The translations under genes and the position numbers were made by a program. The notes under the pieces were generated by a model. It saw only the letters and a list, made by a program, of their open reading frames with translations, ran no database searches and had not been told where the DNA came from. A stretch of 7,010 nt of DNA from Selaginella moellendorffii (lineage: Eukaryota > Plantae > Lycopodiophyta), in assembly GCF_000143415.4 (NCBI RefSeq), contig NW_003314691.1, positions 1 to 7,010 on the forward strand. Direction: 5' to 3'. This document shows, piece after piece, positions 2,071 through 7,010 of this stretch (positions are counted from its first letter, which is position 1; each line of letters opens with the position of its first letter).

Positions 2071-2298
2071 AGCAAAGAAATCGATTGACACTATCTCTGC
2101 AAGCTCTCAGCTCTAAGGTTTTAAATCGCCCTTGTCTTCTTGTCTCAATACAGGCACCCAGTTTTTCTAAGGAGTGAGAGAGAAAGAGCTCGACCAAGTG
2201 AAGAAAATCCTCCTTTAAGCTTAATCCATGGAAGCATGGAGGATATAAAGCTAGCTCTGGAGCTCCCAGAGCTTGAGGGCAGAAGCGTCATAGAAGAG

Positions 2299-3147
2299 AT
2301 GGGTGTGTGCTTGTCAAAGGCATCCACGAGAGCTTCTTCTTCCTCTTGGATTTGTAGCGATGTCCACTACATGAGCGGGGTTTTCAGCGAGGAGGAATCG
2401 TCTCAAGAGAGCGCCGCGCGAGCCTCCACCGATAGCTGCGACTCGTCCATCTCCAGGCTCAAGCACTTTTGCCTCTGTGGTCCACCTTTGATCTCCAACT
2501 CGGTGCTGGAAAATGCGAGCTTGATGGCGCATATGGAGCAGAAATCTCTGCGAGAGACGGCGATGATCCGGCTCAAGAAGCTGTCGCTGATGCCAGTGGG
2601 AAGAATCGATGACGAAGCTGGCGTCCCGGGGCCGCAGAATTCACCAGTCTCGACCTGGCAGCATCCGATCATCGTCGATGTGAGTGAAGTGATCGATCCA
2701 TCGCCGGAGGAGCAACCGATCCAGCTGGTTGCCCAGGAAAATGTACTTGGAGTCTTTGGCGGCTTCCACTCCTCAAGTCGATTGCTAGATCTCAGCAGCA
2801 GCCAGGGATCGTCGCAAGGAGCGTTTGGGTCGCCCCTCTCGGTAGAAATCCCGCTTCTCGATCCGGCATTCTCTGGCGATTTCGATGACCACGCCTCCGA
2901 TTCTAGCTCAGATCTCTTCGAGCTGGAAAGCCTGGTGGCAACGTCGACGACGACGACTCCGACTCTTACCTCGGCGCGATCTTCGATCGATCCGGACGAA
3001 GCCTCGAAGGAAGAGAGATCTACGCAAGAAATGGGAGCTTTGGATGGGCTAGCAGCAGCGGATGGGCCTAGAACATACCTCATTGTTTACTCCATCTCCG
3101 GGAAGCGCGCAAAAGTGTCGTCTTCATCCTCCTGGAAGACTGTGTAG
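2299..3147 (+). CDS. Intronless Ser/acidic-rich protein (282 aa) with N-terminal MGVCLSK motif and PKS/BIG GRAIN1-type SSDLFEL motif
   Basis: Open frame 2140-3147 with in-frame ATGs at 2236 (303 aa) and 2299 (MGVCLSKAST...). MGxCxS fits plant N-myristoylation plus S-acylation signals. DDHASDSSSDLFELESL (2884-2934) resembles the conserved SD(A/S)SSDLFE(I/L) motif of PHYTOCHROME KINASE SUBSTRATE and BIG GRAIN1-like proteins. The family call rests on this one short motif; the start codon is uncertain. Confidence 0.65.
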   Translation: MGVCLSKASTRASSSSWICSDVHYMSGVFSEEESSQESAARASTDSCDSSISRLKHFCLCGPPLISNSVLENASLMAHMEQKSLRETAMIRLKKLSLMPVGRIDDEAGVPGPQNSPVSTWQHPIIVDVSEVIDPSPEEQPIQLVAQENVLGVFGGFHSSSRLLDLSSSQGSSQGAFGSPLSVEIPLLDPAFSGDFDDHASDSSSDLFELESLVATSTTTTPTLTSARSSIDPDEASKEERSTQEMGALDGLAAADGPRTYLIVYSISGKRAKVSSSSSWKTV

Positions 3148-3415: not shown

Positions 3416-4438
<1,023 letters not shown>

Positions 4439-4723
4439 AGCGGAGTTGCGGAGTTTTTTAGATGGATCGCCACAGAGAACATCAACCGGTTCCATCGATT
4501 TAACGTTACCAACATATCACACAGATTGGAAAGAAAGAAAATTTCTTATTGCTACTAGCATTTAGTACGTTAAAAAGGATATGCCAAGTGTAAGCTAATT
4601 TTTAAGAAGAAAACCCACCCTCAATAGTGGGGATCTTTGTTAGTTATTGTGGGAGGGAAGACAAGGAGACAGGCAGTAGGAGCTAGGGCAACGAGAAATT
4701 TCCCCATTCTCAAGTGGAACGCT

Positions 4724-4957
4724 ATGGCGGATTCTTGCGAGGGCTCGGTGCTGGAAGAGGATATCGATGACGATTACAATCCCACAGGCGAAGGCGAAGG
4801 TGAGATCGATGAAATTTTCGCCGGTTTTCTTTCTTCCTTCCGTAGAGATCGTTGAGTTGGAGCTCGAGGCCTTCTTAGAATTGGTAGGCGAGGATTGAAA
4901 GAGTCTTTTGTAGTGGAATGGAGGCCGTTTTGTGAGGGAAAAAGAGAGAATAGTTAA
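4724..4957 (+). pseudogene. CEP164: Apparently frameshifted 5' region of a CEP164-like gene (N-terminal acidic motif and WW-adjacent segment)
   Basis: Exon 4724-4799 encodes MADSCEGSVLEEDIDDDYNPTGEGE, and after a 46-nt GT-AG intron (4800-4845) continues EIVE; compare recalled human CEP164 VLEEDYDETYIPSEQEILE. That frame stops at TGA 4896-4898. A different frame (4868-4930) reads GLLRIGRRGLKESFVVEWRPF, matching [21 protein letters not shown], and stops at TAA 4955-4957. Confidence 0.6.
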
Positions 4958-5130
4958 AACAATGCCGAGGGCTGTTTGGAATCCGTAAGTTTTTTTGTTT
5001 ACAGCCTTTGTTCTAAGTTTGCTAGACTACTCAGACCAGCGCACGAACTTGTACAGGGAATGCGCTCACACTATAATCAGGTAGCCTTGCTTTGTTCTTC
5101 TGCTTGTAAATAGCGGCACTGCTTGTGTAG

Positions 5131-6399
5131 AAACTGAAACTTCAACACAGGCGATTTCATTGCTTCCGAGGATGTTTCCACCAAAGCGTTTGCGTAAGAA
5201 AGGTTTTGTTGTGTATTTCCTAAGAATGCTGCTTAAACTTGGCAGAACCAGTCAGCCCGAGAGCTCGAGCTGATATTGGACGCCTTCCAAGTCCCAGTAA
5301 GATTAGTTTCTTGTCCAGTGTCATGTATTTCTCTCTTTTCTTTGCAGCCGCACCCGTAGAGCAAGGAAGCACTCAGGGCTCAATGGTGAAGTGGAAGTCT
5401 AGCGAAGGAAAAGATAGCCAGGGTGGCCTGCAATACAACGTACCGCAGCCGAGAGGTGATGGGGATGAAGCGGAGCAAAAGAAGGGCCAAAGATCGATGC
5501 TGAGTAGCTTACGAACAATGGAGCAACCTCGACTTTCTCCAAATTACACGTCCATGCAAACGGAGTTGCTGGAGAAGGTAAAGAAGGACCTCGAGGAGGA
5601 AGGCTGCAATTTGATGGAACAGAGGCGAAGGGATGTCATTGAAGAGGTCGAAAGGCAAATAGATGAGGAGAGGAAGAGGCTGCAAGAGATACAGAACTCG
5701 AAGCTTCAAGAAGATCTGGAGCTCGAGTATAAACTTCTCGAGCAGAAGGAGCTGGAGAGGAAGCGTGCTTGGGAGGAGAGGCTCAAACAGGAAGAAGAGG
5801 AGAGCGCAAAGATGGCCAAAGATCTTGCAGAGCGGAGGAAAAAGACAGAGGAGGATCTTACAAAGGTGTTGGAGCTGGAGACGAAGAGCTTCGAGCTGGA
5901 AAGCTTGCAGCGGCTGAACTCTTTCAGAGCGGCTCTGGAGGACGAAGAGCTAAAGCTAATCGAATCGGAGAAAACAAAGACTTTGGCTCTCGTCGAGGAC
6001 AAAGTTCTAGCAGAGGAGGAGCTCGTCGCGAAGGAGATGAAGAAGGACGCTCTTGGAAGGATGAAGCTACTGGCCCAGGCGCTGGAAACGGCCGTTTACG
6101 AAAGGGAACTGGAGGTGGCGAGACAGAGGGCGATGGAGCGGGTGGAATGGGAAAGAAAGGAGCTCCGGATGAAGATCGAGAGGGAAGTGGACGAGGAAGT
6201 GGCCAGTTTCAAGGAAGATCTTGTGAAGGAGAGGAGGGAGCGAATGCTACAGCAGGTTTGCAGGAGGATTTGCGAAGAACACAGGCTCCATTACGAGGTA
6301 ATCTCATTCCCGATCGAAGGAAGTTCTAACTCCAAGCAGGCTTTGTCGCGAGGAAACTTTGGTGTCCCGGACAAAGCGTTCATGGCTGCGAGGTTCTGA
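5131..6399 (+). CDS. Glu/Lys/Arg-rich coiled-coil protein, probably the body of the CEP164-like gene; 5' end uncertain
   Basis: Phase-consistent exons 5131 (or 5151)-5193, 5246-5296, 5348-6297 and 6340-6399 (stop TGA), with GT-AG introns of 52, 51 and 42 nt; the last has a CTAAC branch-site motif. The 950-nt exon is stop-free and E/K/R/L-rich (e.g. LLEQKELERKRAWEERLKQEEEE). The link to CEP164 is inferred from position downstream of the CEP164-like N-terminus. Confidence 0.75.
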
Positions 6400-6431: not shown

Positions 6432-6559
6432 GCAGCCATTAGAACGCATGATCGATCGAAAGCTGCAAGTAGACGAGCGAGCGAGTAAAACTTCCGTGAT
6501 CGTGTGTCAACACGAGTTTAACTGTTGGTAAAAGTTCTCGGCAGTAAACGTAGATAATT

Positions 6560-7010
6560 TATAAAGGGCGGGCAGTGTGAACGGAGTTAATGGCTGGGAA
6601 TGAGCTTGGTTTTCCGGGGAGGACGCTAAACCCTTATTCCTAGCAGTATTGTTTTTGCGGCCGATAAACTGGGCTAGGTGGGAGAAGGGCTTTGATTTTA
6701 TTTGTGGAGCGCGACGACGGCGGAGGAGTGATTTCTTCGGCGCTGTTGCTCCAGCGCGCGAGCACGACGGCGGCAGCTGCGAATTCCTTCCCGGCGCGCA
6801 GGAAATCGCGATGGAGGAGGCGTCTTGACCTAATTCGAGGTGCGGCATTGTTAGGGTTTTTGGGATTGATGGAGAGCTCCCAGGCAGCAGGCGCTTCCGC
6901 GTTTTAGGCCTCCAGGAAGAAGAAGCTCGAATGTGCAATTCGAACATCTCAGGCTAGGGATTTATGGGGGCTGCCTGCCCTCTGGGCGGTTACTTGGGAG
7001 CCCTTTTTTT
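6560..7010 (+). promoter_or_regulatory. Probable promoter and 5' leader of a gene beyond the window
   Basis: TATAAA at 6560-6565, GC-rich stretch about 6705-6830, reverse telo-box TAGGGTTT at 6852-6859 (same orientation as before ROP), several short ATG-initiated ORFs, and no recognisable protein in any frame. Confidence 0.35.

Follow-up and report, generated by a model that had tools for sequence, protein, structure and literature searches.

In animals, the head of CEP164 with its WW module recruits TTBK2. Few transition-fibre proteins are as widely conserved as the CEP164 proteins, which have a WW domain at the N-terminus (PMC11190437). The literature searched contains almost nothing on CEP164 in land plants (the trypanosome paper just cited gives no plant detail), and no paper linking CEP164 to Selaginella was found in it. 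The closest systems for comparison are the human CEP164 N-terminal domain (PDB 7NWJ, 7O06 and 7O0S; TTBK2 fusion 7O3B) and a set of loci in metagenome contigs (L005-L044). The locus considered here, in Selaginella moellendorffii, is probably a divergent CEP164 homologue, with a head that is out of frame in the allele carried by the window and open in the other allele, and with a WW core that is unrecognisable in both.

The comparators were collected by scanning metagenome contigs for the exon-1 motif V-L-E-E-D-x-D-[DE]-x-Y-x-P, written as a degenerate DNA pattern. Forty loci match this pattern and 38 of them are CEP164-type genes, which makes the motif a near-specific CEP164 signature in that collection. 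At these 38 loci the motif lies in an exon reading M..IN(G/D)QTVLEEDYDENY(E/Q)PTEE, with a GT donor directly after it; at least 29 loci also show, inside the available flank, a CEP164-type exon 2 (EIxEYARVIGIDP....LLYIAREGINAPLP..WKP) or exon 3 (..GDIYYFNF..G.SIWDHPCDEYYR..). The sole pattern matches outside a CEP164-type context are loci L008 and L015 (MALIRFREGSLVVLEEDEDDMYIPS). The human CEP164 N-terminal domain (7NWJ, 7O06, 7O0S) is matched with an E-value of 1.1e-25 by L024:3700-3924, from an intron-poor locus, which as a positive control also matches Pfam WW with an E-value of 1.5e-10 (41.4 bits). Many of the CEP164-bearing, intron-containing contigs come from a few series of samples and probably represent DNA of the (animal) hosts in metagenomes of symbionts; none of the forty appeared to be human. 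The comparators represent few lineages, are mostly near-identical and include no plants; because they were retrieved with the window's own motif, any score of the window against an exon-1 profile is circular.

The window, its haplotypes and its gene models

The window, by which is meant the whole 7010-nt stretch of DNA that was analysed, is S. moellendorffii scaffold GL377995.1 by exact look-up. Over the gene region it has the same sequence as GL377617.1:814645-827872; GL377695.1 represents the other haplotype, and the assembly reportedly contains both. The sole differences between the window and GL377617.1 are indels at 1625 and 6507-6550 and the unmatched last 75 bases, which mark the two as separate consensus sequences of one haplotype. 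Relative to that main scaffold the window is 16 nt shorter near 6508 and 10 nt shorter near 6550, its bases 6936-7010 have no match there, and a 607-N gap occupies positions 961-1567 of what is a small unplaced scaffold; as a piece of the assembly, the window may be redundant or in part chimeric. The gene has as neighbours a minus-strand kinesin and, at 3452-4438, a Rac/Rop GTPase. Between them lies a 335-codon open, Ser-rich ORF (2140-3147, plus strand), for which the public table calls no gene and Pfam gives no match. Where the first exon region of the Rop GTPase should lie, the GL377695.1 locus has an N gap (4361-4460), and the public model there is accordingly truncated (141 aa versus 196 aa).

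The RefSeq models (XP_024523886-94, XP_024542938-41 and XP_024521659-66) describe this same locus, but they omit its CEP164-type exons: every isoform starts at ATG 5172, on both haplotypes. Window coordinates reproduce isoforms X1, X3, X4 and X5 exactly (Table 1), and the body of the downstream ORF is 97-98% identical to S. moellendorffii RefSeq proteins, a word search with it returning only its own RefSeq clusters. An initial annotation of the window, made from the sequence, had described the downstream coiled-coil exon as free of disabling lesions, and the ORF at 5239-6399 is indeed open. It had further proposed either a pseudogene in the making or a truncated protein begun at a downstream ATG; the RefSeq protein does begin at one of the codons it named, 5172, and the frame lesion is allelic. 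That the short protein is annotated on both haplotypes argues against an abundant 461-codon transcript (the long reading discussed below) in the tissues sampled, from which such a transcript may be absent. A 42-nt in-frame intron, 6298-6339, is removed in isoform X3 and kept in the other isoforms; very short introns are thus annotated in S. moellendorffii.

RefSeq names the gene 'vicilin-like seed storage protein At2g18540' or 'trichohyalin-like'. These names seem to echo nothing more than the charged helical composition of the body, rich in Glu, Lys and Arg, and the Pfam scan of exon pieces finds no vicilin or cupin domain. The AlphaFold2 model of the body (P0010) is disordered over residues 1-88 and helical over 89-246 and 259-335; a long helical region downstream of the head, here a predicted one, may be a feature shared with CEP164-type genes. 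The Selaginella protein differs from CEP164 in that it would be at most 461 aa as a whole and that no similarity to the comparators can be detected in its body: tblastn of the body against the CEP164 loci finds nothing, in locus flanks that may stop short of the coiled-coil exons, and phmmer of the 374-aa body against 1.84 billion protein representatives returns the query itself only.

Table 1. Exons, introns and homologous segments of the locus, in window coordinates
Feature	Position	Strand	Description
Exon 1	4724..4799	+	ATG in good context (gct ATG g); CEP164 N-terminal signature VLEEDIDDDYNPT; phase 1 end; donor GTGAGA
Intron 1	4800..4845	+	46 nt; GTGAGA, pyrimidine tract, TAG; splits GAG as G|AG, then ATC (Ile)
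Exon 2	4846..4931	+	86 nt; begins in the frame of 4848 (EIVELELEAF, TGA 4896-4898)
Exon 2, distal part	4865-4930	+	CEP164-homologous in the other frame only: RGLLRIGRRGLKESFVVEWRPF
Putative intron 2	4932..5004	+	GTGAGG ... TTTACAG; includes TAA 4955-4957 and AVWNP 4971-4985
Putative exon 3	5005..5080	+	22 nt short relative to the other haplotype, between 5067 and 5068; WW signal absent in all frames
Putative intron 3	5081..5150	+	GTAGCC ... ACACAG; required for the open 461-codon reading of the other haplotype
Exon 4	5151..5193	+	RefSeq start ATG 5172 (MFPPKRL); frame open upstream to 5151 (AISLLPR)
Exon 5	5246..5296	+	Introns 5194-5245 and 5297-5347, the latter retained in isoform X1; coordinates reproduce RefSeq proteins exactly
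Exon 6	5348..6399	+	Disordered linker, two long helices, TGA 6397-6399; optional intron 6298-6339

The head region compared with CEP164

Upstream of the annotated start, the reading from ATG 4724 is MADSCEGSVLEEDIDDDYNPTGEGE. Past the 46-nt GT..AG interval 4800-4845, the frame from 4848 reads IVELELEAFLELVGED as far as its TGA at 4896-4898, and the frame of 4724, resumed at 4871-4930 (frame B), reads LLRIGRRGLKESFVVEWRPF. The frames and stops listed in the initial annotation are all present by translation; its start of frame B at 4868 adds one Gly codon.

The likeness to CEP164 begins in exon 1. As in the human N-terminal domain and in the comparator loci, a start Met stands a few residues ahead of VLEEDxD[DE]xYxP; the pattern, which the window has at 4748-4782, shows an expected count of 0.00 when the window is shuffled. 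The likeness continues at the first intron, which in the comparators is in phase 1, splits a codon as G|AG and is followed by AT[CT] (Ile) in 8 of the 8 examined. The junction in the window, GAA G|GTGAGA...CGTAG|AG ATC, is the same. The second donor falls 0-2 nt past the W-K-P codons in comparators; in the window, GTGAGG stands 4 nt past W-R-P.

Exon 2 of the comparators ends in LP..W(K/R)P, and so does the stretch in frame B, where RGLLRIGRRGL...EWRP in the window stands against KDLLYIAREGI...NWKP. Frame B (4856-4930) aligns with CEP164 exon 2 over 21 columns, with 21.6 bits and E 2e-5 in BLASTP (a single comparison) and P 7e-5 in hhalign; its exon-2 HMM score of 7.1 bits is equalled by one of 3000 composition-preserving shuffles. 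A frameshift-aware profile-to-DNA alignment, of the kind that the initial annotation had called for, likewise places the exon-2 region above chance: purpose-written, with the concatenated comparator exons as its scoring profile, it gives 36.7 versus 18.0 +/- 3.2 for dinucleotide shuffles (0/400, z 5.8). The match is partial. Of the pre-WW helix-loop-helix (EIxEYA...LLxIAREGI...LP..WKP) only the distal half is matched; the proximal half is reduced to E-I-x-E, ~9 residues are gone, and in the window haplotype the halves lie in separate frames. A shortfall of about 10 residues had been noted from the letters; measured against CEP164 exon 2, it is ~9 (28 aa against 37).

Searches of general collections with the Selaginella sequences are silent. 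No exon piece of either haplotype is assigned to a Pfam family at E up to 10; phmmer of the pieces against PDB finds no CEP164 and returns only chance similarity to an MHC chain and protein A repeats; two pieces submitted to the ESM Atlas yield no usable match; neither the exon-1 ORF nor the exon-2 ORF of the other haplotype gives a match in word searches; and the short ORFs are not on record in public contigs by exact look-up. The initial annotation had named a lack of CEP164 or WW hits for either frame as counting against it, and on the Pfam and PDB searches with Selaginella pieces alone the CEP164 claim would have fallen, but frame B does match the comparator CEP164 exon 2. The description of the gene as CEP164-like accordingly stands for exon 1 with its signature, the phase-1 junction and the distal part of exon 2, but does not extend to the coiled-coil body, in which no CEP164 similarity is seen. 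Judged from sequence, a CEP164 ancestry holds for exon 1, its junction and the distal part of exon 2.

The WW core itself is another matter. A canonical WW domain (PF00397) carries a pair of Trp spaced by about 20-22 residues, with an aromatic YY.N strand and a Pro at its end. EWRP supplies the Trp and Pro of the first strand at the expected place; the second Trp and the YY.N strand are missing from the Selaginella locus. The YYFNF...W.HP core of the WW domain is absent in every frame, and YYFN...W..P is undetectable in any frame of either haplotype. Pfam WW (PF00397) matches no piece of either haplotype at E up to 10, against 1.5e-10 for the L024 control; the exon-3 HMM finds no significant reading of exon 3; and over the WW and third-helix region the frameshift-aware alignment does no better than shuffles in both haplotypes (z about 1). 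AVWNP (4971-4985), once taken for a weak WW remnant, does not survive as such: it is equalled by 143 of 3000 shuffles and lies inside a probable intron. As a candidate for the second WW Trp it was rejected too, being 58 nt downstream of Trp-x-Pro, in another frame and not significant. NFNTGDFI (5138-5161, plus strand, in the frame of 4724) resembles the WW segment NFATGESI at 5 of 8 residues; it was set aside because it comes after a stop codon and the WW region is not significant. It overlaps the boundary of intron 3 and exon 4. Since the WW core is unrecognisable in both haplotypes, the binding of proline motifs by the head would probably be lost in both.

Two features of the repeat content of this region can be recorded here. 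The sequence GA(T/G)ATCG(A/T)TGA occurs three times, at 4760-4770, 4802-4812 and 4845-4855 (spacing 42 and 43 nt), and each copy encodes an acidic-Ile-acidic stretch (EDIDD, GEIDE and EIVE). Tandem Repeats Finder detects no 42-nt tandem repeat, only direct repeats of 11-17 nt. Reading through intron 1 as coding sequence (EGEIDEIFAGF...) gives no score against the exon-2 HMM and runs into TGA 4853.

A frame break carried by one haplotype

GL377695.1, the other haplotype, reads TTT at the TT of the window (4881-4882), and this one extra T in exon 2 rejoins the two frames. In place of the window's TGA 4896 it has TCA; it has lost both GTAAGT at 4985 and the acceptor at 5004; and its 22 extra bases after 5067, in putative exon 3, contribute KNHPKLQ and leave the frame intact as far as exon 4. 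Checked for frame continuity with the strongest splice sites, the other haplotype gives one open 461-codon ORF, from the conserved ATG to the annotated stop, and the window a reading from ATG 4724 that stops after 42 codons. The chance of an open, in-phase path through the strongest sites is about 0.015. The initial annotation had judged the N-terminal module broken: the exons are out of frame in the window haplotype and the WW half is unrecoverable, but the lesion is allelic. A Logan contig of the locus begins at about window position 5118, so the break is outside its coverage.

In the mechanism that these facts suggest, the acidic VLEEDxDDxYxP motif, the start codon, the phase-1 intron and the exon ending in EW(R/K)P would come from the CEP164 N-terminal domain and stand ahead of a fast-evolving helical body. 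In the window allele, translation from ATG 4724 would end at TGA 4896, and the 22-nt deletion would break putative exon 3 as well; together, the stop after 42 codons and the deletion would leave a coiled-coil protein made only from ATG 5172, without the whole of the CEP164-type head. In the other haplotype the one extra T would rejoin the two frames and keep 461 codons open from the conserved start.

The loss of one T in the window is the simplest reading of the frame break. However, LLRIGRRGL of frame B is the better fit to the CEP164 profile when set beside the in-frame FLEFGRRGF of the other haplotype (hhalign P 7e-5 versus 0.007; z 5.8 versus 2.6), so the extra T may be a later compensation and not the ancestral state: an older frameshifting deletion of about 10 codons, common to both alleles, could have been compensated subsequently by that T. 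All three haplotype substitutions in exons 1-2 change an amino acid, which fits relaxed constraint; haplotype differences in the body comprise about 9 replacement and 5 silent changes, and constraint looks weak across the whole gene.

Competing readings and the meaning of the locus

It is improbable, in our estimation, that the window allele is still functional, but the case deserves to be set out. Weak in-phase sites (an acceptor at 4856 or 4862, then donor 4932 with acceptor 5039) would join exon 1, frame B and exon 4 into a head that is without its first helix and the WW core. The AGs at 4856 and 4862 are both in phase with exon 1, the homologous stretch begins at 4865, just past the second of them, and the 108-nt intron 4932-5039 preserves the frame into GMRSHYNQ and AISLL. 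The same AGs (4855-4856 and 4861-4862), leading as they do into frame B, show to be wrong an earlier contention that a 30-nt intron is the only splice capable of bypassing the stop. Yet the first AG beyond the pyrimidine tract is that of 4845, which matches the conserved CEP164 junction; acceptor 5039 has a poor tract and failed the site filter; and splicing would need both weak sites at once. Unrestricted enumeration of GT-AG pairs in the window produces 827 open paths, so that an in-frame path is expected by chance and the mere existence of an in-frame model proves little.

More improbable still is that the upstream region is a 5' UTR with short upstream ORFs, that its CEP164 likeness is fortuitous, and that the real gene, in both haplotypes, is an orphan coiled-coil protein beginning at 5172. 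The RefSeq start on both haplotypes and the silence of Pfam, PDB and the Atlas on every piece agree with this, as do the haplotype differences in 4724-5080, whose density is no lower than that in the coding body and some of which are indels of a length not divisible by three. Against it stand a pattern that, across a very large collection, hardly occurs outside CEP164 genes and that is not expected by chance in the window, an intron junction identical with that of the CEP164 comparators, a match of distal exon 2 that is independent of the pattern, and the openness of the other haplotype through its strongest sites (p about 0.015). The least probable of the alternatives is an assembly or base-calling error in the consensus of the window haplotype: the 1-nt difference does fall in a short T run, and the window, a small unplaced scaffold, has an N gap and ends in a tail unmatched in the main scaffold, but GL377995.1 and GL377617.1, separately assembled, agree base for base over 4600-5400 yet differ elsewhere, a 22-nt gap cannot be a base-calling slip, and the assembly is Sanger-based (PMC5750206).

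The preferred reading, a divergent CEP164 homologue with an allelic frame break in its head, probably holds, then, on the evidence of motif, junction and frame. From it we infer, as distinct from observe, the splice sites used, which allele is ancestral and a part played at the sperm basal body, including the 'remodelled basal-body docking component' that the initial annotation had envisaged.

The locus is a concrete CEP164 candidate in a plant with swimming sperm, and a misnamed one: the RefSeq label 'vicilin-like seed storage protein' is misleading. It also offers natural variation, the frame of the head being open in one allele and closed in the other, with the WW core gone in both. In the sperm basal-body toolkit of this plant, a CEP164-type part may be decaying or being remodelled. 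A bolder proposition, which we consider unlikely although worth stating, is that this is the sole Selaginella CEP164 gene, its WW domain lost and its head gone in one allele; if so, the docking or maturation of the de novo-formed sperm basal bodies would be independent of the CEP164-WW pathway. The locus thereby raises a testable question: is the CEP164 head still needed by plant sperm basal bodies?
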